64,000 nt of DNA from Lepidodermella squamata (Eukaryota > Animalia > Gastrotricha): contig JBLDXI010000001.1 of the NCBI GenBank assembly GCA_047495785.1, forward strand, positions 1,054,001-1,118,000, in the 5' to 3' direction. Each line of letters starts with the position of its first letter. Within the stretch, counting starts at the first letter, position 1. Made by a program: the position numbers and the translations under genes. The notes under the pieces are model-generated. The model saw only the letters and a list, made by a program, of their open reading frames with translations. It had not been told where the DNA came from and did not search any database. Below, piece after piece: positions 14,130 through 64,000 of this stretch.

Positions 14130-15283
14130 TCAAAAATTTGTCATTGGGTAGAACTGGCTCAGTTCTGAGCAATTGATTTGAACTGGTTGTCGATAAGTCC
14201 GTTCGTTATATTTGTAAGCCCAATATTCATACCACTCTTCGCGGTGATTCCAGTCAGATTCTGAACACAGAGAAATGTCTACATCGTTCCAGAAAAGCTG
14301 AAGTACTTACCCAAGCAAATGTTCAGATCGAAAACCCTTGTGAGGTAATTGTAGTAGTCAAAGGGAATATTCACCTCAACGCCTTCAAACAGTGTCCTGC
14401 GCAAAGGAATAACCGTATCGAGAGAATGCTGATTTAAGAAACATGGTTATGAACTATCATGACGCTTGTTATATAAGTTGATTACTTTTACGCCGTGGAC
14501 TTCTGGATCTTCAATCAGGAGATCTGCTAGATTATGATCGGGGTCATTAGGATCATATATAGCGCCTTCTCCGGCCGAGCGTGAATGCAAGATCATAACG
14601 AATATGTCAAGGAAAGGCCATCTCCATTCTATCCCTAGTCGATCAATGAAAATGGACAAAGATTCGGCGGTAGAAAAGCATTTGAGCTTGTAACTTTTTT
14701 CCGTCGCTATTCCGATTTGCCCATATTTGTCAACAAAATCTTGAGCTGCCGATGCTAAAATAAGGCGCTCAGCATACTTTTCAACATCCCTGCCCAGTTC
14801 AGGATCGCTCGGAATGATCGCCACGTCAATATCATCATCCCACGGAATCATTGATTTGTTGTGACGATACCAGCCGATCAGCGTGCCGGAGTGGATGTAG
14901 TGAATGATCCCTGCTCTATCGAGGAGCTCTTCACAAGCTCGTAGGCAAAACGCATACCATTCATGTTCTGTTCGATTAAGGACATCAGGAAAGTGCTCCT
15001 CAACGAAAGTAGAGCTAACACCGGCGATTTGCTCATTCTGTACCGACGGCATTACTCCCAGATCGATATTTTCCTTATTTGGCACCGAATAATTCCACAA
15101 AATCAATCCCAAAGTGATGTCTCCTGATTCCTCCATTTTTTTAATTGACACATAATTGACAAGCAAAAATTGCGATAAGACGAATGCAATAACGAACAGA
15201 GGCAAGAGAAACTGTTCAAGCCGAATATTTTTTAATGAAAGAGGCATTTTATTTTTGCGACTGGACCGGGAATTTCGTTCCAT
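14130..15283 (-). CDS. LicD-family type II membrane phosphotransferase, copy 1 (exons 15283-14486, 14428-14311, 14260-14130; start could be 15247)
   Basis: N-terminal TM; GTLIGWYRH..IPWDDDID; WRWPFLDIF; FEGVEVNIP; WNHREE; ends YPMTNF*. Confidence 0.88.
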
Positions 15284-15844
15284 GAGCATGTGAACACCGC
15301 ACAGCGAACAGCTGAGCAAACTTACGGAATATTCACTACGCTAACACTTCTCAGCTCAGCTCTGTCGGCTGGAAAACAGTTCATATGCCGTCTATATCCT
15401 CTGGCTTTTCGGTGTGATGACTAATCACGAAACCTAGTCTGCGGCCTTAACTATTTTAGCCTGTAACTAGCAATAATGGACCCGCAAATTTCTTGGTTCC
15501 GGATTCTGGCTAGAGAGCATGATAATGATTTCGAACAGTAGGTTGCATGAGATAAGTGAAAATTCACTTCCGATAAAGATCAACAGTTCAGATCAGTAGA
15601 AACTTTATTACTCATTCAAACTACGAACCGTGGTTTAACCCGTGATTGATATCACTCTGTTTACTTGTAGAGCAAGATAATTTACCCGGTTTATCATGGT
15701 TTTGAGAAAAATCATGGTCCTTCAACGGTATTAAAGAGACTGGTGTATAGCATTTATCTGCAATAATTCTGACGATAACTAATTAAAATCGGGAGTAGCA
15801 TTATTCTAGTCTAAAATCGCAGTCAAAATCGTTTTTAAAAACAC

Positions 15845-16181
15845 TGTGAAACCACTTAAAAGTCCACCCCTGACGCGCACGCCTATTGGTCCATCGATCG
15901 TTGCTATGACTCCTGCTATGACTGAAACGTTCAGTCGTGCGATCCATAAAAATTTTTGCAACTAGTTTTTTTTGCCGCAGTAATTTGCCACGATTAATAT
16001 GGAGTTTGCGATCGTGGTCAATGGAAACCGTGCAGAGGGTGTGGCAAGGTCATTTTTTACATAAGTAAAAAATAATTTAATAGTGGACCGCACGACGGAA
16101 ATGTTTCATCCGGGAGTCATAGCAACGATCGATGGACCAATCAGCGTGCGCGCCAAAGTTCAACTTTTTAGTGGTTTCACA
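15845..16181. mobile_element. MITE/foldback-like element with about 100 bp imperfect terminal inverted repeats
   Basis: 15845-15946 is the imperfect reverse complement of 16084-16181 (shared core ATTGGTCCATCGATCGTTGCTATGACTCC). No coding capacity and no clear TSD. Confidence 0.7.
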
Positions 16182-16571
16182 ATGACCACGAGAAAATTGC
16201 GCAACATGAAATACAATTTGCGTCAGTTCTAAATAGCATATGAAAATGTAGTGTCCAAATTTCTTCCGTCCAAATGTAGAGGTTTCTTAACCTATTTCTT
16301 AAAATTCAAGGTTGGCTCCGAAATTCCTCAAAATTTACCTGTTGATCCAGAATCTTCGCCCCGAGGTTTCGCATTTTTGTCCATATTTTTCAGACGAAAG
16401 GTTAATTTTCAAAAATAAAAAAACGTGTTTTATCCAAAGTTAGAGTTAGTTACGGTATGTTATATTTAAAAGCGAATAAATTTTTCACTATAAAATATAT
16501 TCTATTTGAGCTAGCTTTCAAGATGTATAAGCATAAGAAGGATGTTCGAAGTTGCAACGATGGTGACGTAA

Positions 16572-17717
16572 TCAAACATTTGTCATAGGGTAGAACTTTC
16601 TCAGTTCTGAGCAGTTGATTCGAACTGGATGTCGAAAAGTCCTTTTGTCTTTTCCGCTATACCAATATTCATACCGCTCTTCGCGATGATTCCAGGTGGA
16701 TTCTAGAAACAGAAAATTGTCGATATCGTTCAAGAAAAGCAGAAAACGTACCCATACAAATTTTCATGTCAAAAACCGTCGTGATGTAATTGTGGTAGTC
16801 AAAGGGAATATTCACCTCAACGCCCTCGAACAAAGTCCTACGCAAAGGACTAACCATATCGAGGGGAAGCTGATTAAAGAGGCGTTATTATAAACTATTA
16901 TGAAGCATAGTGAATAGAAAAGTACTTTTACGCCGGGGACGTCTGGATCTTCAATCAGGAGATCTGCTAGATTTTCATCCGGGCCTTTGGGATTATACGT
17001 AGCCCCTTTTCCTGCTGAGCGTGAATGCAAGATCATGACGAATATGTCTAGGAAAGGCCATCTCCATCTTATATCTTTTCTTTCAATGAAAAGTGACAAC
17101 GATTCGTCGGTAGAAAAACATTTGAGCTTGTAACCATCTTGCGTCGCAATTCCGATTTGCCCATATTTGTCAACATAATCTTGCGCTGCCGATGCTAAAA
17201 TAAGACGCTCAGCATACTTTTCTACATCGCTTCCCAGTTCAGGATCGCTCGGAATGATCGCCACGTCAATATCATCATCCCAAGGAATCATTGATTTGTT
17301 GTGACGATACCAGCCGATCAGCGTACCAGCGTGGATGTAGTGAATAATCCCGGCTCTATCGAGGAGCTCTTCACAAGCTCGTAGGCAAAACGCATACCAT
17401 TCATGTTCTGTCCGATTAAGGATATCAGGGAAGTGCTCCTCAACGAAAGTAGAGTTCGCACTATGCTCATTCTGCACAGACGCTATTACTCCCAGATCGA
17501 TATGTTCCTTATTTGGCACAGAGTCATTCCACAGCGTGAAGCCCAAATTGACGTCACCAAATTTCAGGATTTTTCGAAGTGAAACATAATTGACACACAA
17601 GTATTGCGATAAGACGAATGCAATAATGAACAGAGACAAGAGAAACTGTTTAAGTCGAATATTTTTTAATGAAAGAGGCATTTTATTTTGGCGACTGGAC
17701 TGTGAATTTCGTTCCAT
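16572..17717 (-). CDS. LicD-family phosphotransferase, copy 2 (3 exons)
   Basis: Close paralog of copy 1; GTLIGWYRH, IPWDDDID; ends YPMTNV*. Confidence 0.88.
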
Positions 17718-18043
17718 GAGCATGCGAACTTTGTACAGCTGAACCAACTGATAGAATATTCACTACGATTCTATGTCACCATATCTTCTCTGCTCAGCAA
17801 TGTCGCCAGGAAAAAATGTCATGTCAGTTATGTCCACTGGCTTTTCAGTGTGACGACTGACGGCTCATAGTAATTATGAATCTCGCAAATAAAATTTGTG
17901 AATTCCCTGAGCTCAAGCGAAATATATCAGATAACGATTTATTGCCACGATATAGCCAATATATTTTGGGCTGTCTTATTTTCGGCCAGATATAAGATAT
18001 AAGTATAGCTGAAAGAAATTCGAATCAGTGATAGGTGAAGTAG

Positions 18044-19117
18044 TCAAACATTTGTCATGTGGTAATATTTCTTCAGCTCTGAGCAATTGATTCCCACGGG
18101 ATCTCGATATGTCTCTCGGCGAAATTTGTTGAACCAATATCTTTCATACCGCTCTTCGCGATGATTCCAGGTAGACTCTGTGCAAAAAGTAACCCTAACT
18201 TACTCACTGGGAAAAACAGGGATAACTTACCGAAACAAATTTTCAAATCAAAAACCGTCGTGAGGTAATTGTAGTAGTCAAAGGGAATTTTCACCTCCAC
18301 GCCTTCGAACAAGGTCCTACGCAAAGGAATAACCCTATCAAGAGGATGCTGGTTCAAGAAAAGTGATTAGGCTATTGAGAAAGTTAATGTAATAAGTTAC
18401 TTTCACGCCAGGAACTTCAGGGTCTTCAATCAGGAGTTCTGCAAGATCTTGAAAGCGATCTTTCGGATCATGAATGGCTCCTTTGCCTGCTGACCTTGAA
18501 TGCAAGATCATGACGAATATGTCAAGGAAAGGCCATCTCCATCTCCATCTTATATCTCTTCTCTCAATGAAACGCGACGATGCTTCGGAAAGAGAAAAAC
18601 ACTTGAGCTTGTAACCATCTTGCGTCGCTATTCCGAATCTCCCGTATTTCCTAACGAAACTTTCCTCTGCGGCTGTTCGAGCGAGACGCTCAGCGTACTT
18701 CCTAACGTCACAGCCCAGTTCAGGATCGCTCGGAATGATAGCCACATCAATATCATCATCCCAAGGAATCATTGATTTGTTGTGACGATACCAGCCGATC
18801 AGCGTGCCGGAGTGGATGTAGTGAATGATCCCGGCTCTATCGAGGAGCTCTCCACATGCTCGTAGGCAAAACGCATACCATTCATGCTCAGTCCGATTTA
18901 GCACATCAGGGAAGTGCTCCTTAACGAATGAAGAGTTCAGGCCGGCATGTTGCTCACCCTGCACCGCTGGATTTGTTTCCAGCTCGATATTGCTTAAATC
19001 CTTCCTTATTTGGATTGACACATGACTGATAAAGAATTTTTGCGAAAGGATGAAGACAATAACAAAGAGAGGTAAAAGAAGTGTCTTAGGTCGAATATTT
19101 ATCACTAAACGAACCAT
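18044..19117 (-). CDS. LicD-family phosphotransferase, copy 3 (3 exons)
   Basis: Same motifs; RWRWRWP; ends YHMTNV*. Confidence 0.88.
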
Positions 19118-19933
19118 TTAAGTCAAGCGATTAGACGGGTGAAAACTTCGCCTCATGAGCACTGAAACGGCAAAATCCAAACAGCTGAAAAAACATACAG
19201 ATGGCAACGACAGAACGTGTGAGTCTCTCATCACTGCTCGGAAAAATCAAGTTCTCAGCAATATCGCAGATTAAACAATGGTTAAGATTATTTCTTATTC
19301 GAAGCGCGTTTATTGTTTCGACTAGAAGTCAGGCAGTCATTTTCAAGGATTAGGCTATTATGTAAATTTAGGGATCATGCCGAAAGCAGTCTACGGCAGG
19401 CCTTGGCAGGATGTGAAAGCAAGTTACAGATAACAACAGCCTCAATTCTGCTGTAAAAAAAACTGTAAAACGGTTTTGTACGTTAAATAAAGAAGCAGCG
19501 AGCGGCCCGCCTCGGAGCGCCAGTCCCGCTCCTCTCACATAGCTTTGAACGATAGCTTTGACGCGGGCAAAGGCAATCCTTGCTGTAATTTTATTCTTAA
19601 TTCTTACTATTACTGTGTACGACGTACTTTCAATGGGGTGGCTAAAGTTTCGTCTTCTTGGGAAAGAACGAAAATGTTAACTCCAAGGTTTCCTTCCCCT
19701 CGCCCAGGTCAACCAACGAAAATGAAAACCACGTAAATTAGTGTACAGGCACCAACATGGGAAAAAACGAAAATTACGGCGCATTCAATTTAAGAAGTAC
19801 ATTGAAACACAATGTACTTGTTAAACATTGTGTAACAATCATCGCTAAAGGATTATTCTATAGTTAGCCATGCAGAAATAAATGTTCCCCTTGATCTTCA
19901 GAGATCCGAACAAGCGAAGAGATACGCGGTCAC

Positions 19934-20938
19934 TCATATATTGGTGAAAGAATAATATTCGCGCAGATCCAAACATCGAATTTGAACCGGCAACCGCCCG
20001 TTACCGCCTTCATACTCCTGAAACCAATCTTCCAGCCCTTCTTCGAGGTGGTTAAAGTAGGATTCTGCGTACATAATTAAAATTGGCAGTTAAATTTCAA
20101 TAATTAAATTTCAATATAGGCGCATCGACGTACCGCTGCATATATTCAAATCGAAATGGGTAGTGAGGTATCCAAGAGGATCGAATGGAACGTTCACCTC
20201 CACACCTTCAAAAGTTGTTCTTTGCAAAGGGGCGACTAAGCGGAAACTACACTCCTTTTGTGACATCCCGAGATCTTGAATCCCAATATCTCCAACATCT
20301 ATTGCGAGATTCGAAGGATCATAAAAGACACCTTTGCCCGATGAAATAGCGTGCAAAGTCATAACAAAGATGTCAATATAAGGCCATCTCCATGTCACAC
20401 CCTCTTGTTCGACAGAAATTGACATAGATGGATTGAAAGAATAACATTTGATGCTATTATCGTTCTGTACAGCTATTCCGAATCGCCCATATCGCTCAAC
20501 AAAGTCTTTCTCAGCTGCTGCTCGAACGAGACGCTCTGCGTACTTCCAAGTATTCCAGCCCAGTTCAGGATCACTTGGAATGATAGCCACATCAATGTCG
20601 TCATCCCACGGAATCATTGATTGGTTATGGCGGTACCAGCCGATCAGTGAACCAGAAAAGATGAAATGAATGATATGCGACCTATCTAGAAGCTCTTCAC
20701 ATGCTCGTAGGCAAAACGCATACCATTCATGCTCAGTCCGATTTAGGACATCAGGGAAGTGCTCGTAAACGAAAGCTGGATTCACGATAAAATCGCTCTG
20801 AACTTGAATTGGCGTTACAGTTGTCGAGTCTGCCGGGTTGACCCCAGTTTCTTTGAAAAGTTGAATTAAGGTCACAGCTGTTATACTGAGAGGCACGAGT
20901 ATTATGAAAGAGCGGACAGATCGCAGTAGATGAAACAT
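19934..20938 (-). CDS. LicD-family phosphotransferase, copy 4 (2 exons: 20938-20134, 20064-19934)
   Basis: GSLIGWYRH, IPWDDDID; ORF reads through the usual intron-1 site into TFEGVEVNVP; last exon YFNHLEE...YSFTNI*. Confidence 0.87.
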
Positions 20939-21426
20939 CTTCCTCGCGCTAAATCGCCGTTGATACCGTGGGCACTTTATTAGAAATGGCAATGCAGCTG
21001 AACAAACGTTAAAAATCGTGCCTTATAGAAGGTGAAATACGCTCCTCTACTTACGCCTCTACTTACGTCAGAGTGCTAGACGATTAAAAAACATTGGATT
21101 ACTTTTGGGCAAAAACCACAGGGCAAATCAGCAATCGTGAGCATGAATGAACTATAACGAGCTAGTTCAGTCTTTAGGAATTTTCATTGTCCATTTCAGT
21201 GATTTGCCCATCAGCCCATCAGTTAGGTTTGGTAGTCAGCTTTTTTCACGCGTTAAAAACGTCCTCGTATCAGTCAGCTGGACTGTTCCAATTTTCCTAT
21301 TACTTCTTACGAAAGACATGATTGATGATTGTTTACTAACAGTCGTTGTTGAAAAACATAAGCGAAAGAACAATCTATAGTGCAATATTCGTTCTGCGAT
21401 TATGTACTGCAACAAAATGCCTAACG

Positions 21427-22503
21427 CTACCAAATATTTGTGAATGAGTAGTAATCCGTCAGCTCCGAACAATTGATTTCGAGCGGCCATCGGAAATTCG
21501 CTTCGTCCCAGTCTTTGTTCCAGTTTTGATAGTTTTCATGGCGGTGATTGTAACCAGATTCTATTAAAATCAGAAAATCACAGCAATCAACTTCTACCTA
21601 GCGAAAGAAACTTACCCCGACATACACACACGTCGTCGAAATAGGAATGCAGGAATCTTTCATGATCTAAAGGCACGTTGACAGCAACACCTTCGAACGT
21701 GGTTTGACAAAGCGGCATTATAGTGTTCAAAGGATGCTAAAAATCGAAACGCAAAACATGTACTGAGAAATGATTGTTTTCACGAAAAATACTTCCTGGT
21801 TTCCTGAGGTATTCGGATCCTCCAATACGAAATCTGCGATGTTTGCTGATTCTGAATATGAAGGTTCATAGAAGACATATTCGCCTGTAGAGCTCGAGTA
21901 TAGGTACAGGAAGAAAATGTCAAGGAAAGGCCATCTCCAAGCAAAATCCAGCCTGTCGACTCTCCGTGACAGTGATTCGTTGAGAGAAAAACACTTCAGC
22001 CTATCACCGTACTGTGTAGTTATGCCAATATGTCCATATTTCTCAACAAAATCGTTCTCCGCCGCTGCTAGAATGAGATGCTCAGCGTACTTTTCAGCAT
22101 CCCAGCCCAGTTCAGGATCACTCGGAATGATGGCAAAATCAACATCGTCATCCCACGGAATCATTGATTTGTTATGACGGTACCAGCCGATAATTGAGCC
22201 AGAATAGAGGAAGTGAATGATCTTCGCTCGATTGAACAGTTCGGTACATGCCCGCAGGCAAAACGCGTACCATTCATGGTCAGTACTATTGAGTAGTGGA
22301 AGGAAGTGCTCGTTGATAAATGATGAGTTAACGTTAGCCTGAAACTTCGTCGCCGAAATCGACACTTTCGGCTTACGATCGACTTCTCTTTCCCATTTGA
22401 TAGCGATCGGAATGACTGCAGCAATTTGCAATAGTGCTAGAGGTATTACCGTCAAAGATAGTATTACCAACAGAATACGAGGACTAATAGGTATCCTGGT
22501 CAT
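21427..22503 (-). CDS. LicD-family phosphotransferase, copy 5 (3 exons)
   Basis: GSIIGWYRH, IPWDDDVD; last exon YNHRHE...YSFTNIW*. Confidence 0.87.
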
Positions 22504-23663
22504 TTTTCAGTCACATGTCAGAAACTGGTTGAAATTCAGATCAGTTGTGAGACAGACATTTTCTGCTTAGCATCTGAACAAACAAACCCATCATTCAGAC
22601 GATACCTATCATATAAAATTTGCCGAATCGTATGTACTTATGTGGCTTAGCTTTTGAAGAACAAATTTCATGTTCTCAATTTCCGAATCGATTGGTAATC
22701 CAAGGCTGTGATAAGTGAGCCCTTCATCCGAGTGGCCATGGCGGCGTTAACAGTTGCTCATCGTCTCTTCATCTTCGTTATCGCATCTTCGAAACTTCGA
22801 ATAGGCGAGGGCAGATCTTATCCACCATCTGAATAAACATATTATGGCTATGACTCAAGATGATCGTAAAATCACATTGAAATCCAGCTGGTTAATTTGC
22901 ACTGGAGACATTTTCAGCTGGACAGCATCTAACAAATATTTTTGTGATTATTATCCTGAATACAACCTCCTACTCAAAGCAAAATTACAGAGCATCACGA
23001 TGATGAATGCATTCAAGCTGTATAAAACCCATGGCATTATTTGCCTATTATTGTGGAATAAAATCGGCTCTCTCAAACTTGAATAGGGGGTTGACAAGTA
23101 TTCGAAATAGGTAAGGAGTGGCGTAACGACTGCCGGAAACATCTCGCTAGCAGTCCTGTTAGAGTGGAACACCCCAACAGCATTAATGATCCGAATATGA
23201 AATTTGAGCATTTTTCATTTAACTCGAACATGAGAATGCCAGACCTATTGGTCGGCCTCGATTATTTGAGCATTCGATTGAGGTGATCGGATAGTCAATA
23301 ATGCCCAATGGATTCTGGTACTAATCGTCATTGGCAAAAATGGTTGCGGTTTGACTTGATCACTCAAAGGCCATTGTTGAACTGTTAAAAAGTGATGAAT
23401 GGAATTTTTAATGACTGATGCAAAAAAAGATTTTCACACACGTTCTCTCTCTTTTTCAGAAAAATTCTGCATTCTATTTTCTCTGAGTGCGTCAGGCGAC
23501 TCTTTCCTTTCTGGAACATTGGATATTAAATTAAATGCCAGAAATTTCCTAAGCGAGAAATAGCACTTCAGCCAAGCTATTTCAGAGCGAAACCACGGCT
23601 TTGTTAACGCAATTTTCTGCTCTAAAATGGCTCACACATTGTTTTACATTTCAGAATAGGAAA

Positions 23664-24513
23664 ATGCCATTGAGTATTTTGTTGCTTACCTTATTCTTAG
23701 CCTTCTCTCGCAGTGAGAGCATTCCTGAGCATCAGGTTTGGGCAAAAGCCAGGTTTGTAATTCGGAATATACTCAAGAATCTTTCAGGACCCAGCAAAAG
23801 CAAAAGTTACGGACAAAGTTTTCTTTGATATCTCAATTCGAAACGAGCATGTTGGAAGAATCGTTCTTGGCCTCTTCGGTGACTTGGCTCCTAAAACGGT
23901 ACTCAATTTTCGCACAATCGCAGAGGGTTCGAAATACGACGAGAAAACTGGACTTCATCTGACCTACGTCAACTCTATCTTTCATCGAATAATCAAAGAC
24001 TTTTGTTGCCAAGGAGGTGACATTGTTTCTAAAAACGGCTATGGCTCAATCACAATTTATGGCACTACGGTAAAGACTTGAAAATGCCATTGGATAGGTC
24101 CTAATTTGATTTTTTTCCAGTATCACGACGACGATCCTGCTATACTGAATCACACGCAAGGCTATCTTCTTTCAACTGCTCATCATGGTCCAAATACCAA
24201 CGGCTGTCAATTTTCAGTTTTGGCGAAATCGACACCGTGGCTTGACGGGAAACACGTTGTTTTCGGTCGCATCTTAGAAGGCTTTGACGTCTATGATAAA
24301 ATGAACAGCCTGAAAACAGGTGCGAATGATTGGCCTATTGATCCGCCTGTAATCACTGCGAGCGGCATCCTGTCTTCGGGCCCGCTTTCGATGAATGGCA
24401 TGAGATCAACGAATGTGTTACTCGGTCTAGCTGGTAGCATGTCCTTTGGTGCTATCCTAATTTGGCTGAGATCCAGCCGTATTCATCAAGCATTTGTAGA
24501 GAAAGAACTCTGA
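23664..24513 (+). CDS. Secretory-pathway cyclophilin (PPIase) with C-terminal hydrophobic anchor, NinaA-like; exons 23664-23735, 23788-24069, 24121-24513
   Basis: Signal peptide; VTDKVFFDI..GRIVLGLFG..PKTV.NF; FHRIIKDF..QGGD; GPNTNGCQF; WLDGKHVVFG; hydrophobic VLLGLAGSMSFGAILIWL near the C-terminus. Confidence 0.9.
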
Positions 24514-25012
24514 AAATAAATTCTTTAATTCGCTAAAAGGTGAGTTTATGACTTGAATGTTGCTACTTGCACTGGCACTTATTGGGCATCTTATTAGATC
24601 AGAATATCATGATTGAATCATCTCAGGAAAGAATAAGGTTTTAGTATCAGTTTCTGCTCAATGTAACCTCCTCGTACGATGCAGTCATATTGCTCAAGAT
24701 AACTACCTCTGCCTGCCTTTTTTATATCGCCCAACATTGAATGACTTGTGCCGAATGATAAGAAATGATGCAATTTTCTTGCAGCACAATAAGGATGAGC
24801 AGACCTTTCACGCCCCAGAATGTCAACAAAACCACATCAAGAGTGTCCTATTTCTCCGCTATCTGTTTCTGATTCATGTTGAAGTAATTCATATTGCGGA
24901 TTCCAGAGGTTTCTCGGGCGGTATAAAGCCGAGAGGTGAAAGGCAGCTGACAGTGTATTTTGCTTGACGACAGTTCTATCCTTCTGGCTTTCCGACCGAA
25001 CAATTCCGAAAC

Positions 25013-25926
25013 ATGGGCAAAAAACGCTACGCCGTTTTGGAAACCTTGCACGTTTTCAAAAATCCTTTGCTTGAGACTAAGGCAAGAGATGACGGTTTTA
25101 ATATCGTATGCCTCCATGTAATTTTCTAATTTTTCAGGCGATCGACATCAAATCCCCCGATTTCCAACAATGGGCCCTCTATGGAGATAAACTCATTGAC
25201 TCCTATTTACTGGATGAGTTGCCTAGCAACGGGCCATTGCGAGACATTGTAAAGAGCAATGACATCTTGGGATCTATTGTTATAACGTTAGTTATTTCGG
25301 AAATCAAGTATACAGTATAAATTTTGTATTTATTGCATTCCGGATTTTCAGTAGGGGCATTGGTGGAATCGGCCGAGCGCAAAGGCAAATGGCTGATGGC
25401 CAGCTTGCCCAGCAAATCGTTGACCTCCAGACAAGCTACCGGCAGTTAGCTCGGCAAAATCCGCAATCTAATTGCGGAGCTTTCTATCGACCTGGTTTCC
25501 TGGAGAATCGATCTTGCAAAGTCTACGCTGTTCCCAAGACGCTAGGAGACATTTTCGAAGCTTACATATTCGCCATATGGCATGACGTTGTTGGCGATGA
25601 AGCAGCGAAGATGAAAGTAGTCAACAGCGTTCTGCATAAAGCTTTACGCCCTTTCATTGGTAAGAAATGGAAATTCTCGAGGTTATGCTATACATTCTAC
25701 TCCCCTTACAGATTATTGTCTGGCTGTTGGTATTGAGAATCCTACACTTAAGTATTGCAACGAGCTGACTGACTCTGTGAATACTGGGCGTCGATTTGTC
25801 ACGGAGTTTCTACATATTAGCAAATTTCGAGGAGTTGGACGAAATACCGATGTTGCTAACGCCGCGGCGGCTTTGATCCTTTGGACAAAAAACAAGGGAC
25901 GCTGGCCGTGGTTGATTCAGCGATAA
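25013..25926 (+). CDS. Small RNase III + dsRBD-like protein resembling the C-terminus of Dicer; exons about 25013-25081, 25138-25286, 25352-25659, 25712-25926 (5' end uncertain)
   Basis: HVFKNPLLETKA; degenerate signature FQQWALYGDKLIDSYL; VPKTLGDIFEAYIFAIWHD (Dicer RNase IIIb-type); KFRGVGRNTDVANAAAA (Dicer dsRBD-type). Splice phases are consistent. Confidence 0.72.
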
Positions 25927-25941
25927 AGCCATTAATACAAT

Positions 25942-52484: not shown

Positions 52485-53630
52485 TCAATCTAGATTTTCA
52501 CCCAATAGCTCATACTCATGAGGGTAATTTGGCTCCAAATTAGTTAGATTATACATGAAGCTGAGCTGGCTACAATTGACGACCCCACGATCTTCGATAG
52601 ACTTGATTTCTAGTTCTTTAAGGTGGTCGTATTCACGGGCTAAATATGAATGAATTAAACATTTTATTAGGTTACAATAATTTAACTCACATTTGCAAAT
52701 ACGGAAGTTGTAGTTTTGCCTCAATATCGGCTCAATTTTGTTAGGGATATTCACATCCATATCCTCGAATGTAGATCTCCGCAGAGGGAAAACCCAGTCG
52801 TATCGAAATAACACCATGCCTTGGAAAGCGTATGGCTGCTGAATGATGATATCAGCTGTATCTCCTGCGCTAAATTCCCCGACAACATTGGCGATCTCCT
52901 GGTGCGTTGAATTATAGTAGGCGCCCATTAGAAAGACGTCAACATAAGGCCATCGCCATTTATCGGTGTTAGGCAGTGGTTGCGAGATATCAGGCGATGG
53001 TGAGTAACATTTGATAGTCCTAAGAACATCATTAACTACGATCGAAAAATTATCGAACCTCGGGAAGCCCGCCATGGATGTCTTCAAAACCGTATAATAA
53101 TCCGTAATGTTTCGAAGTTTTTCCGAAGATGGGAAGATAACGATGTCGATATCATCATCCCAGGGGATGAAATGACCAGCATGACGGTACCAGCCGAGAA
53201 GAGAGCCGTAATAGAGTGAATACGTGAAATTGGCCTGTTCCAGGATCTCAATGCATGTTTTTAAGGTGAATTTCAGCGCTTGCCGTTGTTTTTCGCTAAT
53301 TTGAGGCGAGAAAAGCCGAACCATATCTGACTTCGTGAGATTCGTCCTGAATGCTAATTTGGTAGTTGTCTCCTCCTGAGGAAACATGAGATTTCTAAGG
53401 CCAGAAAGCTCATCTCGAAAATCATTCAAATCGATAAATTGAAGTTTCTCTGTAAAAGTTTCAGGACTTCTAGTCGTCTCAGTGAAGTAGTACTTGAAGT
53501 TCCAAGCTGCGATGATGTCTCGATAGGACTTATCTTCGTTCAGTTCCACGTAGAATAGCAGCAGCATTGTAACGAAAGTCGGCAGGAAAATAAGCGCTAA
53601 ACATAACGCTCGACGTTGTAGGTAATTCAT
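52485..53630 (-). CDS. LicD-family phosphotransferase, copy 17 (2 exons; intron 52640-52690)
   Basis: GSLLGWYRH; IPWDDDID; no intron 1; YDHLKE...YNLTNL. Confidence 0.88.
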   Translation of the reverse strand: MNYLQRRALCLALIFLPTFVTMLLLFYVELNEDKSYRDIIAAWNFKYYFTETTRSPETFTEKLQFIDLNDFRDELSGLRNLMFPQEETTTKLAFRTNLTKSDMVRLFSPQISEKQRQALKFTLKTCIEILEQANFTYSLYYGSLLGWYRHAGHFIPWDDDIDIVIFPSSEKLRNITDYYTVLKTSMAGFPRFDNFSIVVNDVLRTIKCYSPSPDISQPLPNTDKWRWPYVDVFLMGAYYNSTHQEIANVVGEFSAGDTADIIIQQPYAFQGMVLFRYDWVFPLRRSTFEDMDVNIPNKIEPILRQNYNFRICKCELNYCNLIKCLIHSYLAREYDHLKELEIKSIEDRGVVNCSQLSFMYNLTNLEPNYPHEYELLGENLD

Positions 53631-53810
53631 GCGCTATTTCGTCAGCAAATTTCAAGGTACTAAAAAGTGTTGCACATAATGTAACAATGCGTACAAATTT
53701 TGTAAATAGGCTTTTGTATAACGAGTGCAAAGTTTGTATAACGAGTGCCTCAAAGTGTGAATTTGGTATTACAAACTTTTTATTCAATTTTCAAGTGGAA
53801 AAATGGGTGA

Positions 53811-54947
53811 TCATTTGATGTTTGTTACACGGAGTAGTCTTTTCAGGATCTTGCAAGCAACTTTTGGCAGAGAAAAATTTCCGACAGCCGAGTCAAAGCG
53901 ATAGAGCCATTGGCTTGCTGAGAAAATGTTGAATTTAGCTAAATTTTGATCATTTTTTTTTATAAAATACCTTGACACGATTCGATGTGATAGATCCTTT
54001 TCAGAATTTTGAGCGGCTGATTAGGGACGTAGACAGGAATTCCCTCAAGCTTTGAAGGCTTCAAAGGGAAAACCCAATCGAAAGGATATGCCAACTGTGA
54101 AAATATGTAAAAATAAATTGCTTAAAAATATAAATTACGTTACTTTGCCCCGCCGCCAATGATGTCGAGCTTTGATGACTAAATTTCGCGATATTTCAGA
54201 ATGAATTCGGTCGAAATTGTAGAAAACCGCAGATTTATTGATTAAGGACGCAGCTTGGACGATGTTAATGTCAACGAAGGGCCATCTCCAGTTTTGAACG
54301 GGGCTTGATACGTCGCTATCAGTCGAAAAACATTTGACATTGATCGTACCGCCTTCGAAATCTTCGGCAAACGTTGAAAAATTGCCAAATTTGCGTTGGA
54401 AAGTTGCGTTTGTAATGGCGATTTCAAGCAGAGACCACGCGATGCCCATTCCTCCAGCGTGATTGTCTCGCCTTGGGTAAACGACCAGCTCCAAATGATC
54501 ACTCCATGGGATGAAACTGTGGTCATGTCGGTACCAGCCGAGTAAAGTACCATGAAATAGAGAGAATTCAATGCCAGCATTATTTAAAAGCTCAATACAG
54601 CCTTTTAGAGTTTTACGACTTGCTTCAAGTTCCGAAGCGTTCAGAGCCGGGGCGAAAGCTTCTTTGATTTCTGTCAAATCGTCCAGCTGTTCAAACCGGT
54701 GGGGTGAAGCGTATTCTGAAAGGCCTATCTCAGCCTTAGTTCCAACCTCGTGATGATCCGATAAGGTAATTTCGCTTTTCGGCGGTTTTGTCGTAGTAGT
54801 AAGGTCGCGAGTTGAATCATCGAAGAAACATGGCTTTCCCAGGGTGAAGATGGTTAGCAGAAGGCTCGATGCGAAGACAACGACCAAAAGGCATTGCACA
54901 AAGCTGTTTCTCATGGCATTACCTGAAAAGCACTTGTTACGGGCCAT
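53811..54947 (-). CDS. LicD-family protein, copy 18, degenerate catalytic motif (3 exons)
   Basis: GTLLGWYRH retained but IPWSDHLE replaces IPWDDDID; exons intact and in frame. Confidence 0.83.
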
Positions 54948-55106
54948 GCTGAGGTTTTTTACGCCTCTTAATGCCACAATGGCTAACACGAGCGTTGGCG
55001 TATTTACGTTGTTTATACAAAAAGGTGACCGTAAAAAATCTCAGTTAGGAGCCTTTTTATTTTAATGAGAAACTATCACAGATCTCTCGAGTTGCCAAGT
55101 TAATAA

Positions 55107-56453
55107 TTAATATTGGGTCATGTTCACGGTGGAGAAATGAGCATAATCGTCTTCAGTCATAGATTTATCTTGCTCGAATCCGAATCTCGGCCGTTTCGCG
55201 CGGTATTTCGGCCAGATTAAATTCGTAAAATTGTAATAATTCGCCAGCCTCGAGCAGTTAACAGTTCCAATCGATGTCCTCGATAGTCCTTTCTCCAAGC
55301 TATGAATATACCACGGAGCTGAAGAAAATAAAAAAAATAAAAAAATTACTTGAAAATGGGGAGTCTCACATTGACAAAGCCGAAGATTGTAAGATCTAAC
55401 AAGAACTTTTCCCGGGTTATTCGGTACGAAAACATCGACAGATTCGAACTTGGCAGGTTTCAGCGGGAAGATCCAGTCGTAAGGGTAAGAAAATTTGCTT
55501 TTCGAGGTTTGGCCAATCAGGCGGACGAAAATATTCTCGCTGATTTCAGAGAAATTTCTCATCAAATTTCTGTACTCCTTCCCGGTTTTCAACGAAATTC
55601 CTTCTGCGACGAAGAAATCAATGTAAGGCCAATTCCATTGCTTCCCTGGGACGCTTTTCGAGTATTCAGGTGATAGTGAAAAACATTTAATTGTATCCTT
55701 ATTGTAAGGGATCATGTTGAATTTCCCGAAAGTTGTTAGAAATGTCAAATTTGACAATGCCGTGCTTCTCATCCTTACCGCCATCTCGGTATTACTCGGA
55801 AAATCCGAGTCGGAAAAAATCACTAAATCCATGTCATCGTCCCAGGGTATAAAGCTACCATTATGGCGATACCAGCCAATCAAAGAGCCGAACATTAACG
55901 AAAAGTTCAGCTTCGCCGATCGGACGAGTTCGACGCAACCTTTCAAAACATGTCGGTACATTTCGTAATCGGTTTTCGAAAGTCTTCGGCGGTAAACATC
56001 TCTCATTTCTTCGTCCGTGAAATTGCTTCGATAAATCTTTTCCGCTTCGTTGACGTTATGAAAGTAGTCGTAATAGCTAACGTTATACGTCGCTTCCATT
56101 TCCGTAGAATTGGCCGAAATTCGCGTTGTTGTTCGCCTTACCCTTGACCGAGTATCTTCGCTTTTGCGGATTTCAAGTTGGAACGACGTTGTTTTTAATG
56201 GAACCTCCTTTGCCCCAGATTGGGAAGACAGCTGAGAAAGCATCTTAGGTTTGCGAGTTTTGTCCTCATGATAATAGAAAACAGCACTCTCGGCGTAAAG
56301 ATCGAAAAATTCCGATTTTTCCGCGTCATTTCCAGACGGAATAGGATCAATTTTATCCGGCTGGTTTTCCCAAAATATAAAAATTGTTAATATTGCTACA
56401 GCGATGATAGTTACTAGCCTATAAGCTAGCCGTTTTAATACTAGCATAGTCAT
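55107..56453 (-). CDS. LicD-family phosphotransferase, copy 19 (2 exons; intron 55319-55369)
   Basis: GSLIGWYRH; IPWDDDMD; long stem; C-terminal extension. Confidence 0.88.
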   Translation of the reverse strand: MTMLVLKRLAYRLVTIIAVAILTIFIFWENQPDKIDPIPSGNDAEKSEFFDLYAESAVFYYHEDKTRKPKMLSQLSSQSGAKEVPLKTTSFQLEIRKSEDTRSRVRRTTTRISANSTEMEATYNVSYYDYFHNVNEAEKIYRSNFTDEEMRDVYRRRLSKTDYEMYRHVLKGCVELVRSAKLNFSLMFGSLIGWYRHNGSFIPWDDDMDLVIFSDSDFPSNTEMAVRMRSTALSNLTFLTTFGKFNMIPYNKDTIKCFSLSPEYSKSVPGKQWNWPYIDFFVAEGISLKTGKEYRNLMRNFSEISENIFVRLIGQTSKSKFSYPYDWIFPLKPAKFESVDVFVPNNPGKVLVRSYNLRLCQCETPHFQVIFLFFLFSSAPWYIHSLEKGLSRTSIGTVNCSRLANYYNFTNLIWPKYRAKRPRFGFEQDKSMTEDDYAHFSTVNMTQY

Positions 56454-56637
56454 CTCGTAACACTATGTAACATGAAATGCTTGAGCCTTGTAGCGAGTAG
56501 GATGGACAAAAACAAAATGTTTGTCAACACCGAGTGCACAGTTTTAACGTTTTGATACTCATCAGTATTACTTTTATTTTTTTCGAGAAATTCGGATGCT
56601 TATTTATATCACAGATCGCCGAAGAATTGGAATTGCC

Positions 56638-57905
56638 TCATAGATTCAACTTGCTTGTATCGAATCTTAGTCGCTTTGCGAGAATGTTCGGCCAGCTTAA
56701 ATTCGTAAAATTATATAAATTTGCGAGCCTGGTACAGTTGACAGCGGCAATAAGTCTCCTCGATAACCCTTTCTCCAAGCTGTGAATGTACCAGGAGGCT
56801 AAAAAATATTGTTGAAGAATAGAAAAAATAGCTATGAAAATATCAAAGTCTTACATTGACAAAGCCGCAGAGTGTAAGACCTGATTAGAACTTTTCCAGG
56901 GCTATTCGGTACGAAAACATCGACAGATTCGAACTTGGCAGGTCTCAGCGGGAAGATCCAGTCGTAAGGGTAAATGAATTTGCTCTGCGGAATTTGACCT
57001 GGAAGACGGACAAGCAGATCGGAGTCATCTTTGCCAACTCTCATCGGCTTTTTCATCGAGGTATGTCTATCAAGTATCTCTGCGACTAAAATGTCGATGT
57101 AAGGCCACATCCACGGATATCCTGGGACAATTTTCGAATATCCACGCGATGTTGAATAGCATTTAATTGTATCCTTGTTAGACGGCAATATGTCAAACCT
57201 TCCGAATGTTGTAAGGAATGTAAAATTTGACAATGCCGCCATTTTCATTCTAACCGCAATGTCGATATTACTCGCCCAGCTATTGTCGGGAAAAATGACT
57301 AGATCAACATCGTCGTCCCAGGGAATGAAGCTCTCGTTATGCCGATACCAGCCTATTAAAGAGCCAAACATCAACGAAAAGCTCAGTTTTGCCGACCTTG
57401 CTAGCTCGGTACATCCTTTCAATACATGTCGGTAGGCCTGGTATTCGGAGTCTGACAATGCTCGTCGATAAACTGTTCCCAGCTCTTCGTCCGTAAGGTT
57501 GCTTCGATAAACCTTTGTCTCATTGAATTCGTGAAAGTAGTCATAATAGCTGACATTGTACGTCGCTTCGAGCTCGGTAATATTACCCGAGCTTACCGTT
57601 GTAGTTCGCCTTATTATTGCAGCTGTTTTTGCTGTTTCCGATTTCTTCGCATCTGATTGGGAAGGTCGAGAAAGCCGCGGCAAAGTAATGGAAACTTTAG
57701 GCTCTGTTTCGTCCTCGTGGTAATAGAAAAAATCATTCTCCTTAACGAAAGGTCCCATGATTTTCGCCGTTTTCGCGACTTCTGGAAACTGAATTGGCGT
57801 TTCATCGGCCTGCCAATTGCTTAGAAGCGTTAAAATTGACAATGCTGCTACAACGATCAAAATTAGTCGTTTCGAAGTTAGCCGACGTAATACTACCTTA
57901 TGCAT
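56638..57905 (-). CDS. LicD-family phosphotransferase, copy 20 (2 exons)
   Basis: Close paralog of copy 19; IPWDDDVD; last exon WYIHSLEKG...YNFTNL. Confidence 0.88.
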
Positions 57906-58015
57906 CTCGTTTCACAGGTAAAAGATCTACTTGAACTAATGATGCTAATAGTAATACTTATGCATAAAAAATAGACAGCAAGTGCATCATAATTTTATTA
58001 CGTTTAACAGCAATT

Positions 58016-59313
58016 TTAATACTCATCATAAGCCGCATAAAATTCCTGGATCTCATCCAAGTTGGTTAATTTCGATATCGCTGCGATTTGCGAACAGTTC
58101 ACCGAAACAAATTGCTCAGCTGGTTCAGCCACATTCAAATATGCTGGAAATTAATCCAAGATTTATTCTTTAATTTTCCGGCGATTTTGGCTTAAATTAT
58201 TACCTGAGCAAAGGTCCAGGTGATAATCAGCTGATAGGACCGACAGGGGATTGCTTGGAACAAAAGTCTCGATGCCTTCAAATTCGGTAGGTACCAGCGG
58301 AAAGATGTCATCAATGTGAAAAATTTGCTGAAAATTGAACATTTTATGAGAAATTTTGTAGTAATTTTCCGACATCTTACTGTTTCATTTAGCTCGAAAC
58401 CAGCTGGTGTGATCGCAACATCTCTGCAGGCCAAATTTGCATAAGCAACCAAATTGTGGAGGCTTACATTAGTGGAGATAGACTGGGCCTCCATCAAAAA
58501 GATGCTCACATACGGTTGGGAACGTTTGCTTTCAGACGAAATTTGCAAGCATTTCAAATAATTGCCAGATTCCAGAACATTCAACTTCGGAAATTTCGAC
58601 CTGAATGCCTGATTTCGGCTAGCATTATCGTTCAAAAGCCGAGCGACAAATGAGGTGTTCCACGGGTGATTAAATGACGAGAATAGCGCCAGGTGGGCCG
58701 CTTCATTCCACGGGACAAAACCAGCATCGTGTCGGTACCAGCCGAGCAGCGAATCGTAAAATAACGAGTAGGCTATCCCAGAATTTTCAAGCATTTCAAT
58801 GCAACCGCGAAGGGTCGATATTAACAAATTTCGGTCATCCTGCTTTAATTTCGGCCCGAAATAATTTAAAAGCTGAGCCTGATTTAAAACCGATGAATTC
58901 ACGTGAGAGAGCTGGTGTTCAGTCAGCCCTTCGAGAGGATCAAAGTCGCTCGAATTAGTTGCTGGCAATGTTTCATTGCCGGGATCCTTCGGCAGAAATG
59001 CGGCGCCGAAAGCAGTTAGAGGTTTTTCAGTGTTGAACCGACTTCTTTTCCGCTTGACTGATTTCGGCGTTGGAACCGCGAACGGCTCCAGACGCTTTCG
59101 AACTTGAAACTCGAGAATTTTAACATTAATTTCAGCCTCAATCGAAGTTTTCGGCTCGGTATGTACGAATATTTGTTCGTATTTAGAATGCTGACTGGGC
59201 GGGCTAGTGGCTCCAGGCCGTTCGGTAACAACAATGTAAACAGCCTCAGCCACCAGGGCAGTGATGATAAAGACAGCAATTAAGCCTCGATTCGCGATTA
59301 AAAATGCAATCAT
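58016..59313 (-). CDS. LicD-family protein, copy 21, degenerate catalytic motif (3 exons)
   Basis: YDSLLGWYRH...VPWNEAAH; WRWP replaced by RSQP; exons intact and in frame. Confidence 0.82.
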
Positions 59314-59510
59314 TTGTTAGAAAAAATTAACAAAAAAACGCCCGCGTTTGAAATTACAAATAAAAAACTGCTCGAGTGAAGTATTCGCGTCAATTACTAT
59401 ACCATAGCTAGGAAAAAGTCGTGACCAAGTAATGTGTGGACGCTGCCAGGGCTCGAAACCACAGAAAAAATGATGAAGGCTGATTTTAATCACGAAAATT
59501 CAATCGTTTT

Positions 59511-60822
59511 TTATTCATAAGAAAGATAGTAACGTTCCACCTCGTCAAGGTTAGTTATGTTATAAATTCCCTCCAGCTTTGAGCAAGTCACCTTGGAAAT
59601 CGTATTTTCATCGACATTTTCTTCTATCCGATGATTCCTGTGATTAGCTGAAAAAATCAAGTTCAGCTCTTAAATTCACTCAGCTATAGAAGATAACTTA
59701 CTGACACACAAATCAACATGAAAATTTGCTACCAGGACAGGTAACGGATCTTGTGGAATCCACACATCAAAACCTTGGAATGTATCACGTCGTAACGGGA
59801 AAATCCAATCGTACCAATAAGTTGCCTGATCAAATTAATGGTTATAATAAAAGATAAAAATCCAGATTACTTACCGTTTCCCATTGAACACCCGAAGGCT
59901 CACCGATATACGCATCCCACAACTCCGTGCTGTTGTAGTTTACTATATCGTAAATTGTCGTATTCTGCGATTTCGACATTGCCTCCATCGGGAAAAGGTC
60001 GACAAACGGCCATTTCCAGGTCGCATTTTCCTTGCTATTTAAAATGGGTTGTGAGATATTCGGAGAGTCTGAATAGCATTTCAGAATAATTCCACCTAAA
60101 GCTATTTTAAATGGCCCGAATACAGCCCGAAAAGTAGCGTTGTTATCAGAGGCGGCTTCAAGCATTTCAGCAATGCGAGTTAGGTTCCATGGTTCGTCGA
60201 AAGACGAAAACATCGCAAGATCAGCATCGTCGTCCCACGGAATTAAACGACGGTTATGCCGGTACCAGCCTAGCAATCCACCGTAATATAACGAGTAGGT
60301 AATGTTCGCATTCTGCAAAAGCTCGATGCAACCTCGCATGGTGAAAACAAGAGCTTCTCGTTCCTTATCAGTCAGCGCTGGTTTGAAGTGCTCTCTCAAC
60401 TCGTTTTTGGTCAAGTTCATCGAGTAATACCAGTGAAAATATGCATGCTCACTGTAATCTGTGTTGTTCTCGCTTCCAACAGCTGTACTACTATCGCCTA
60501 TACTACTATTGACGTGTGATTTTTCCGTCGCCGCTGTCACTCTAGCAGGCTGCTGTTTGATTTGAGTTGTTTTAGTTTTTGTCGAATTCGACAGAGTTCC
60601 AGAAACAAATAAGCGGCTTCGGGCTTTGATTCCTTCAGTTGGTGTTGGGATTTTAGTTGAAAGTCGCGACGTTGTGAGGACCAGCTTATCGTTTGTTGGG
60701 AGAAGGCTATCGTCAGTTCCCGACCTCTCCATTACGACGATTATGGTGAAAACCTGAAAGCTGAGGGCGCAGAAGATGAGTAAAACCAAATATTTGCGCC
60801 TCGCGCCTAGGAACACCAGCAT
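59511..60822 (-). CDS. LicD-family phosphotransferase, copy 22 (3 exons, Ser/Thr-rich stem)
   Basis: GGLLGWYRH; IPWDDDAD; exon 3 RNHRIEE...YNITNL. Confidence 0.87.
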
Positions 60823-61742: not shown

Positions 61743-61916
61743 GCCATTAGGCCATTAGGCAAGCAACGCAGCGGTGACCTTTTGCTGCTTATTGCCACTA
61801 ATTAGCAATGAAGCCGACCTTTGCTGTCTGCGTTTTATTACTTATGTGGTGAAAAAGCGTGCGATTTGATTACTTCAGCCATCACGCATCTATTGCCTGT
61901 TTGACCCGTTTCAAAA

Positions 61917-62929
61917 ATGAAAACCAGATCAACAACTGATATTTCTGCGTCGAATGTTCTTCAGCCCATCGATTGCAACGCTTTTTCGCCGACTAGTCTT
62001 GTCGCGCCGATTTTCGCGTCTATCGACACTGGCGATGTAAATGATTTCAAAGCAAAATTCAACTGCCACTTCGCCGCATCTGGATGCGAATCGCCATCAG
62101 CCTTGTTTCTCGCCGAGTTGTTCCATTATTCGATCGCTGCTGGTCAGCTGAAAATTGCACAGTTTCTCCTCGACGATTATCTAGTGCCTGTTGACGCTTT
62201 GAATCCAGTCAACGATCGAACGTTACTCCAGGAGGCGTCGGAGGTTGACAACTTGGCCATAGTTCGATTTCTAGTCAGAAACAAGGCCAATCCACACTCG
62301 AAAAGCCTGTCTCCGCTCGATCGTGGCATGACTGCTCCACATCTTGCTGCTTGGAAAGGACATCTACATATTCTTCAATTTTTCTTCAACTTTTACAAAG
62401 GTGATTTTTAAATAAAACTATTTAAAACCCCACCTTAAATAATTTGTGTGTGATTTCAGATAGCGAAGCCGACATCGAGAAATTGGTTTCGATGCAGACA
62501 GATTTTGGCGCCGATGTTTTACTTGTTGCGGCTATTTTCGGTCACAAGTTCGTAGTCAAATACCTGCTGACCGAAACGTCTGTCAATCCGCTATCGAATA
62601 ATTCTACCGGCACGACAGTGGCTCACATTTTCGCTCAGGAACGCTGGACAGGAATGATGCGCTATCTAATTGAAGCCCATGGAAGCCCGGAGCTGCTTCT
62701 AGCTACGAACAACCGAGGCGCCAACCCACTGCATTTCGTTGTGTCGGGCACGGAAAACGGCAGGCTAAAGTACTGCTACGATATTCTCGAATTATTGCTT
62801 AATTACGCCCCGCAGTTGCTGATCATGAAAGACAGAAAAGGCCAGACTCCCATTGACCTGGCTTTCAGAACCGGAATCGCTGATTTGGCTGGATATTTGG
62901 AGCGCAGGAAATTAACTTGCGGCATTTAA
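61917..62929 (+). CDS. Ankyrin-repeat protein; exons 61917-62400 and 62460-62929
   Basis: GMTAPHLAAWKGHLHILQFF, GANPLHF and GQTPIDLA repeats; phase-1 GT-AG intron. Confidence 0.88.
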
Positions 62930-63023
62930 AAAGCGATTAAAATGCTCAAAGACTTGATTTTTTATTTCAATTTTGATTTTGGTTTTCATGGTAATAAAAT
63001 TCGCTTGCTCATCACTGGGTCTT

Positions 63024-64000
63024 TCAAACATTGGTCAGGTTAAAAAAATTCTTCAGCCGAGTACACTTCACCCGCGTTGGATGTAAGCTGATTAGCTTCT
63101 CGTTCATATGATCGTAATGGCGAGCTGAAATATTCGAAGACTCGAATTTTAATGGAAGGAAAAAAAACAAATTGTAAATTTACCTTGACAGAGCCCATAT
63201 TTCGGGTAAGTAGATTTGAGCACAGTTTTCGGGTCGTTAGGTACAAAAACACTCAAGGCCGATTCAAAAACTGATTGTTGGAGCGGGAAAATCGAATCAT
63301 AACCGAACTTCACCTTCAATTTGCAGTTTCAATTAAAACAATTGATCGTCTATTCTTCAACTGACCCTGGGGAAGTCTTCGTAAGCCACCACGTCGTATT
63401 GATAACCGTAAGGCGGTTTTCGCATGACAAAAATGTCAACAAACGGCCATCGCCAGGTGTAATTGCTTTTAATCTGCCTTGAAACGTCGGGCGATGTCGA
63501 AAAACACTTGATTTTAGACCTGCCGACCGGCTGAAACTCGTAAGATCCGAAAGTTTTCACAAAGTAAACGCTGCGAGCAGTTGAATCGCGTAAATTTTGC
63601 GAAATCAACTGCGTGTTGAAACTACGCTGTTTTCTCGTAAAAGCAGGTAAATCTGTATAGACGGCAAGGTCGAGATCGTCATCCCAGGGTATTGCCACGC
63701 CTGCATGTCGATACCAGCCGAGCAACGAGCCGTAAAATAGCGAAAATTCGAATGTTGCTAAATTTAAAGCTTCGACGCAAGCGCGTAATGTTTCGACGTA
63801 AACTTCTCGATCTTTTCCTCGGAGAACAGGAGCAAAAATTTGCTGCAGCATCGACCGGGTATGATTAACGCGGGTTCTTCCATTATCAGGTCGTTTCGCC
63901 TTGACTTTGACCGATATTTCTATAATATGAACTGGTATTGGTCTCGATTTTTCTGAATTTGTGATGAAAATGAAAACTACGCTGCTAAATGCTGAAAATG
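63024..64000 (-). CDS. LicD-family phosphotransferase, copy 23 (5' end beyond the window)
   Basis: GSLLGWYRH; IPWDDDLD; WRWPFVDIF; exon 3 YDHMNE...FNLTNV*. ORF is open to the window edge. Confidence 0.85.

Follow-up and report, generated by a model that had tools for sequence, protein, structure and literature searches.

What explains the presence of more than twenty related genes, arranged one after another, in a single 64,000-nucleotide stretch of the genome of the gastrotrich Lepidodermella squamata (contig JBLDXI010000001.1 of assembly GCA_047495785.1, positions 1,054,001 to 1,118,000; referred to here as the window), and what do their products do? An initial annotation described the region from position 14130 to the end of the window as an array of 23 co-oriented genes for diversified LicD/fukutin-family phosphotransferases. 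Our analysis leads us to conclude, with a probability of roughly three in four, that this is an old, lineage-expanded tandem array of genes for type II membrane proteins that have a lumenal LicD/fukutin-type phosphotransferase domain and employ cytidine diphosphate (CDP)-alcohol chemistry. It does not represent a new kind of system: a known, though little studied, enzyme family has undergone a very large and old expansion that is under constraint.

The extent of the array is apparent from a six-frame motif scan of the window, which finds exactly 23 occurrences of the core GWYRH, all 23 on the minus strand and lying between 14875 and 63719 (each copy is named here by the position at which its GWYRH codons start). 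Searches by tblastn with two full-length copies as queries return the same 23 loci and no further copies in the window, so the number, orientation and extent given in the initial annotation are borne out; position 14130, where it placed the start, is where the stop codon of the first modelled gene ends. The longer motif G(S/T/G)L(I/L)GWYRH-x5-PWDDDxD is read in 21 of the 23 copies, with copies 54539 and 58743 deviating from it, in agreement with the two degenerate copies reported earlier. The copies are strongly diverged, with pairwise protein identities that have a median of 30%, a minimum of 21% and a maximum of 80%. The array had been said to run past the window; what is seen is that copy 63719 is cut at the window end, and the array thus reaches the edge. 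It is interrupted by two 80%-identical carboxylesterase genes, an ankyrin gene, and a block of cyclophilin-like and other sequences.

Assignment to the LicD family is supported in several ways. First, the Pfam LicD hidden Markov model (PF04991; gathering score 22.6 bits) matches 22 of the 23 copies at E <= 0.001 (best 5.5e-21), the exception being 58743, and six copies scored over the whole open reading frame (ORF) give 25.6–72.6 bits. Second, when a profile of all 23 copies is compared with the sequences of solved structures, only FKRP matches (E 2e-6), in an alignment that spans the hG[GS] motif and pairs PWDDDxD with the FKRP sequence PWDYDVD. Third, an AlphaFold model of copy 53195, made from an alignment of 76 sequences (paralogs together with database relatives), is confident (predicted local distance difference test score, pLDDT, 86.8; predicted template modelling score, pTM, 0.87); the modelled sequence retains 17 residues of an in-frame intron, and these correspond to the one weak internal segment. 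The top Foldseek matches to this model are 13 FKRP chains (E about 3e-7 to 3e-6, about 200 columns, 22% identity), followed by other enzymes of the nucleotidyltransferase fold including LnuA, CD-NTases and poly(A) polymerase. The model thereby points to membership of the nucleotidyltransferase (Pol-beta-like) fold superfamily, of which LicD, fukutin and FKRP form an established family according to the available excerpt of PMC2794190.

The residues expected to be catalytic can also be located. In FKRP, residues D360, D362, D364 and D416 are the ligands of two metal ions, and replacing any of them by alanine abolishes activity (PMC6965139); a D-D-D-x-D cluster is common to LicD proteins (PMC11982090). 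The first, third and fifth residues of DDDxD in the array copies align with D360, D362 and D364, and a nearly invariant Asp that follows a W-x-W-P motif is the likely counterpart of D416, as judged from its strand position in the fold. The copies do not appear to be orthologues of fukutin: Pfam scans of the copies give no match to the FKTN_N domain, and among the Atlas neighbours the fukutin cluster stands lower down, at rank 30 with a score of 0.88. Nor do they appear to be FKRP orthologues: neither the C4 zinc-finger loop nor the stem domain of FKRP (PMC6965139) is found in them, a single conserved Cys (within LxxC) precedes hG[GS], and the similarity to FKRP is limited to the catalytic core.

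Gene models were obtained by enumerating GT..AG introns downstream of each core and keeping the stop-free path closest to the paralogs; for seven copies longer introns were permitted, with a maximum of two introns. All 22 complete copies yield intact spliced frames of 310–431 amino acids (aa) with one or two introns, most of which are 44–83 nucleotides (nt) long (the three exceptions are of 149, 226 and 268 nt), and the first intron is missing from five copies. The C-terminal half is complete in every copy, 63719 included. The earlier claim of intact frames despite deep divergence therefore holds. Each of these 22 copies also has an ATG followed, within about 5–25 residues (up to about 42 if an upstream ATG is used), by a strongly hydrophobic 19-mer with a mean Kyte-Doolittle value of 1.9–2.8, which is a signal-anchor (type II) layout. 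The stems downstream of the anchor are variable in length, from 19 to 112 residues. A short tail, transmembrane segment and variable stem had all been predicted and are present, but the description of the stems as Ser/Thr-rich needs tempering, their content of Ser plus Thr being a moderate 11–31%. The arrangement is that of Golgi type II transferases, with a tail, a single N-terminal anchor, a stem and a putative lumenal catalytic domain.

Beyond the core, several further motifs are shared. LxxC and KC are invariant across the copies, W-x-W-P is present in all except 58743, a late C-x-x-L/I is present in all, and all end in x-x-T/S-N-(L/V/I/F/M), with a few variants. The motif (N/D)HxxE is found in 19 copies, reads IHSLE in 55877 and 57353, and is lost only in the degenerate 54539 and 58743. 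Apart from these few variants, the four cysteines, the (N/D)HxxE motif and the terminal motif are as first described.

Bacterial LicD, Mycoplasma mf1 and FKRP/fukutin suggest, by analogy, a plausible reaction; the mf1 enzyme is a LicD protein that carries out metal-dependent transfer of phosphocholine or phosphoethanolamine from CDP donors (PMC11982090). An active copy would most likely bind a CDP-activated alcohol (CDP-choline, CDP-ethanolamine, CDP-glycerol or CDP-ribitol), while the D-D-D-x-D cluster and the Asp after W-x-W-P coordinate a divalent metal. The alcohol-phosphate would then pass, within the secretory pathway, to a hydroxyl group on a sugar of a glycoprotein or glycolipid, and cytidine monophosphate would be released. 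Among the paralogs the catalytic core and the four cysteines are kept while the stem and surface segments differ strongly, and this suggests that the copies may have different acceptors, and perhaps different donors or sites of expression.

The two degenerate copies depart from this scheme. Copy 54539 reads PWSDHLE, with the counterparts of three catalytic Asp residues replaced by S, H and E, although it keeps W-x-W-P and the Asp that follows. Copy 58743 reads PWNEAAH, with the same three positions occupied by N, A and H, and has also lost W-x-W-P and its Asp. Both have lost (N/D)HxxE, a loss seen in no other copy, which suggests that this motif, too, forms part of the active site. GWYRH, the cysteines, the terminal T-N-(L/I) and the remainder of the fold are nonetheless retained in both. 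The initial annotation was thus correct as to their number, and the term degenerate can be sharpened to predicted catalytically dead: judging from their sequences, they are probably dead enzymes kept by selection (pseudoenzymes) that act as non-catalytic partners or binding proteins. A metagenome protein (P0019) has a first domain reading PWDDTVH followed at its C-terminus by the start of a canonical second domain, a 'dead plus live' order.

These observations allow a more specific proposal, that of combinatorial glycan decoration, in which each diverged active copy adds a phosphodiester-linked group to an acceptor of its own and the dead copies 54539 and 58743, paired with active paralogs, serve as partner subunits for acceptor recognition. 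FKRP is a working dimer in which one subunit aids acceptor binding for the other, and a partner-subunit role for the dead copies is plausible for this reason. If true, the array would supply the enzymes, long sought in animals, by which phosphocholine or phosphoethanolamine is attached to glycans; we put this forward tentatively, and as a whole it is unlikely.

A different target for the same fold is also conceivable. The enzymes might act on lipids, on a secreted teichoic-acid-like polymer, or, after shedding, on food or microbes, instead of on the animal's own glycans; bacterial LicD members act on lipopolysaccharide, teichoic acids and glycolipids, and mf1 on a glycolipid (PMC11982090), the long variable stems of the array copies could permit shedding, and two secreted esterases lie within the array. 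However, the copies have signal anchors only, with no signal-peptidase-type secretion signal found in them, and the window gives no hint of a polymer pathway. Moreover, FKTN and FKRP, the only characterised animal members, modify a glycoprotein glycan (PMC6965139, and the available excerpt of PMC4873967). Action on such other targets therefore seems quite unlikely.

Evidence of transcription comes from two public sequencing runs that contain window DNA. The first (X1) is 95–99% identical to the window and appears to be genomic DNA from a strain or species that differs slightly; the second (X2) is at least 99% identical. Contigs of X2 skip the stretches 52640–52690 and 53918–53970, whereas those of X1 do not, and both stretches read CT..AC on the plus strand and hence GT..AG on the gene strand. 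A letter-by-letter check shows that the loose end of another X2 contig joins 54094 directly to 54144. Since its contigs skip predicted GT..AG introns, X2 is RNA, and three of the predicted introns are confirmed: 52640–52690 in copy 53195, and 54095–54143 and 53918–53970, which are both introns of the degenerate copy 54539. Over the 5.5 kb region examined, which contains four copies, the RNA contigs give good coverage of 53195 and of 54539, thin coverage of 51833 and almost none of 55877, so that at least three of the four are transcribed. In addition, 27% of the sampled words of 32300–41700, which contains six more copies, are present in X2. The contigs are unable to rank expression, and the claim is therefore limited to several copies being transcribed and spliced. 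One RNA contig with exon 1 of 54539 (loose ends at 53910 and 54144) carries a variant exon-2-like stretch that differs from the window in several letters (...FDWIFP... against ...FDWVFP...), and an expressed allele or near-identical paralogue of 54539 probably exists.

The array is also under constraint. Ratios of non-synonymous to synonymous substitution (dN/dS) are 0.19–0.37 across the eight paralog pairs for which dS is estimable, dS being saturated in most pairs. Between X1 and the window, 37 differences are listed in copies 51833 and 53195, of which 22 are synonymous and 15 non-synonymous; as about three-quarters of sites are non-synonymous, this proportion indicates purifying selection. 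Neutral evolution is not borne out by either comparison. It could still be argued that this is a birth-and-death array of largely redundant duplicates, many of them becoming pseudogenes, whose diversity is drift and not a functional repertoire and whose degenerate copies are dying, given that two copies are without catalytic residues, that 55877 is almost uncovered in the single available RNA run, and that a dN/dS of 0.2–0.37 is fairly relaxed for an enzyme. Yet all 22 complete copies keep their frames, splice sites, anchor, four cysteines and non-catalytic motifs at about 30% identity and with saturated dS, the degenerate 54539 yields transcripts from which both introns are correctly removed, and the differences between strains are mostly synonymous. 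Such retention is hard to reconcile with neutral decay, the degenerate copies included, and we consider an origin by drift distinctly improbable. An assembly artefact was likewise considered, and is ruled out by the approximately 30% identity among the copies and by the independent DNA-like run at 95–99%.

An exhaustive HMMER profile search of 1.84 billion representative proteins gives 13,206 matches at E <= 0.001, only three of which reach E <= 1e-30. The closest are proteins from metagenome assemblies, and the nearest named matches, all uncharacterised, are from the limpet Patella vulgata, the tubeworm Ridgeia piscesae and the ctenophore Pleurobrachia bachei; x-H-x-x-E and the C-terminal cysteine motifs recur in the limpet and tubeworm proteins. 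A word-index protein search with one copy yields only weak metagenome LicD matches, at no more than about 28% identity, and the same search with the family alignment gives nothing closer, but this near-blank is uninformative as it missed relatives that the exhaustive search found.

The best match, P0018, comes from metagenome contigs that share synteny with the window's left part. Homeobox, M4 protease and nicotinic-receptor genes occur in the same order and relative orientation in both, with identities of 84% for the homeobox gene, 81–85% for the receptor, 39–41% for the protease and 40% for LicD. At this locus the relative has exactly one LicD gene, beside the receptor gene, after which come two MFS genes, one DHHC gene and one PHD gene. 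Since a single LicD gene accompanies the same flanking genes in the nearest detectable relative, the array is lineage-specific, in support of the initial annotation on this point. Three other metagenome contigs with family members (L004–L006) have no synteny with the window beyond the LicD core and are therefore uninformative about this locus. One of them, L006, has two adjacent LicD genes at 7666–11098 with an ankyrin gene beside them, in which no similarity to the window's ankyrin gene was detected; the 'dead plus live' protein P0019 belongs to this metagenome relative. The M4 (thermolysin-type) protease, at 16079–18102 of the relative's contig L001 and 4674–6552 of the window, is fast-evolving and secreted.

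In a maximum-likelihood tree the copies fall into two clades. Clade A comprises the proximal copies (14875 to 31143) and includes P0018, clade B comprises the distal copies (34919 to 63719) and includes two other metagenome proteins, and copy 33121 lies between them; physical order thus mirrors phylogeny. Approximately unbiased (AU) tests do not reject monophyly of either the 8 clade A copies or the 14 clade B copies to the exclusion of outside proteins, and the trees constrained in this way are marginally better. The simplest history starts from an ancestor with about one gene of each type, both of which then multiplied in situ in this lineage; loss in the relative, or a rearrangement that joined the two clades, is a less simple possibility. 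Recent horizontal transfer of a bacterial licD followed by amplification, for which one might cite the word-index search that gave only metagenome LicD proteins at no more than about 28% identity and an apparently bacterial-type M4 protease a few kb away, is rejected as very improbable in view of limpet, tubeworm and ctenophore relatives with the same C-terminal motifs (x-H-x-x-E and C-x-x-L), Atlas neighbours that are eukaryotic clusters (molluscs, nematodes and oomycetes), the presence of spliceosomal introns, whose positions are conserved, and a type II architecture of the eukaryotic kind.

Several points weigh against the interpretation as an array of lumenal CDP-alcohol phosphotransferases. 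First, identity to FKRP, mf1 and bacterial LicD is about 20–28% or less, and the sequence match lies mostly around the N-terminal motif. Second, the third catalytic Asp is placed by its position in the fold, not by residue-level superposition. Third, most of the gene models are computational and were selected by their resemblance to paralogs, and the RNA contigs cover four copies only, one of which (55877) is essentially uncovered. Fourth, the single gene of the relative could reflect loss or rearrangement of an array.

The individual genes, all on the minus strand, are arranged as follows. Clade A begins with 14875 (14130–15289; 350 aa, 3 exons), the positional counterpart of the relative's single gene, and continues with 17315 (16572–17723; 346 aa), which is 80% identical to it, 18796 (18044–19117; 320 aa), 20641 (19934–20938; 311 aa, 2 exons), 22188 (21427–22503; 324 aa), 27351 (26326–27684; 327 aa, with the longer introns of 149 and 226 nt), 29276 (28487–29603; 327 aa) and 31143 (30404–31446; 312 aa). 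The largest gap in this clade, 22504–26325, contains non-LicD genes on the plus strand, with a cyclophilin-type isomerase fragment at 24106–24513 and an ORF at 25389–25736. Copy 33121 (32394–33688; 394 aa), outside both clades, has a long stem. Clade B starts with 34919 (34282–35312; 310 aa), 36137 (35513–36566; 334 aa, 2 exons), 38578 (37820–38887; 318 aa), 39969 (39221–40344; 338 aa) and 41309 (40571–41639; 321 aa), followed by 47199 (46266–47553; 320 aa, with a first intron of 268 nt). Next are 51833 (51099–52298; 361 aa), the modelled copy 53195 (52485–53630; 364 aa), the degenerate but intact 54539 (53811–54947; 344 aa), 55877 (55107–56453; 431 aa) and 57353 (56638–57905; 403 aa), the last two being 59% identical. 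The second degenerate copy, 58743 (58016–59313; 394 aa), has an intact frame and is followed by 60270 (59511–60822; 402 aa), which has the most Ser/Thr-rich stem (31%), and by 63719 (63024–64000), whose 5′ end is lost at the window edge.

Two non-LicD genes of the carboxylesterase/cholinesterase family are interspersed in clade B, the first at 42305–43837 (first exon ORF) and the second at 48964–50427. Both are on the same strand as the LicD genes, and both have a signal peptide and an intact GESAG serine motif. A search with the embedded carboxylesterase gives identities of no more than 37%, to proteins of ticks, nematodes, molluscs and bacteria alike. The ankyrin-repeat gene (61917–62929) lies on the plus, and therefore opposite, strand between the last two LicD copies. 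Many neighbouring LicD genes in 34282–41639 and 51099–60822 are separated by only 110–230 nt from stop codon to ATG; with AATAAA 0–60 nt past the stop, about 100–150 nt is left for a promoter. This density is operon-like, and the RNA contigs bridge neither of the two spacers examined.

Phosphocholine, phosphoethanolamine and related zwitterionic groups occur on many invertebrate glycans and are strong ligands for innate immune proteins. Which enzymes attach phosphocholine or phosphoethanolamine to the glycans of animals has been described as unresolved (PMC6994554, PMC11982090), and LicD-family proteins are obvious candidates. The array offers 21 diverged and, from their motifs, apparently active candidates at one locus together with two natural paralogs predicted to be catalytically null, and with a one-gene relative for comparison it provides a convenient entry both to the biochemistry and to the expansion of a glycan-modifying repertoire. 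Our literature search found no paper that deals with this LicD branch, with rotifer LicD or with so large a tandem array, and no characterised member of the animal LicD branch outside fukutin and FKRP.

How does the array compare with known systems? The ribitol-phosphate transferases FKRP (PDB 6KAJ–6KAN) and fukutin are alike in being type II proteins with a lumenal LicD domain of the nucleotidyltransferase fold; FKRP shares hG[GS] followed by W-D-x-D-x-D, and metal-dependent CDP-alcohol chemistry is probably common to both. They differ in that identity with FKRP is about 22% and alignable mainly over about 200 residues, that the FKRP zinc-finger loop and stem domain are absent from the array copies, and that the fukutin cluster is a distant Atlas neighbour. 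Unlike FKRP, the array copies have a distinct C-terminal module with x-H-x-x-E, two further cysteines and a terminal T-N-L, and FKRP and fukutin are single-copy in vertebrates in contrast to the many copies here. Bacterial LicD and mf1 of Mycoplasma fermentans share the Pfam LicD match and the four-Asp D-D-D-x-D cluster, but are at most about 28% identical and, unlike the array copies, lack introns, a signal anchor, a stem, the conserved cysteines and N-glycosylation sequons. Named metazoan proteins of Patella vulgata (XP_050418138) and Ridgeia piscesae (KAK2180047) have the same motif set, including x-H-x-x-E and the C-terminal C-x-x-L, with only 25–32% identity between the array copies and these LicD/FKTN/FKRP proteins. 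Finally, Calicophoron daubneyi, a rumen fluke, is reported, in the available excerpt of PMC11727788, to have 19 LicD genes, where other flatworms average 2.3, with no functional study mentioned there. The suggestion that a repertoire of this size is new among relatives accordingly stands for the syntenic relative, which has one gene, and is reduced by this published expansion. Both are lineage-specific expansions in an invertebrate; so far as that excerpt goes, the fluke expansion is presented as a gene count and not as an array, whereas the Lepidodermella genes form a single co-oriented array of at least 23 members, with a one-gene relative and two copies predicted to be dead.

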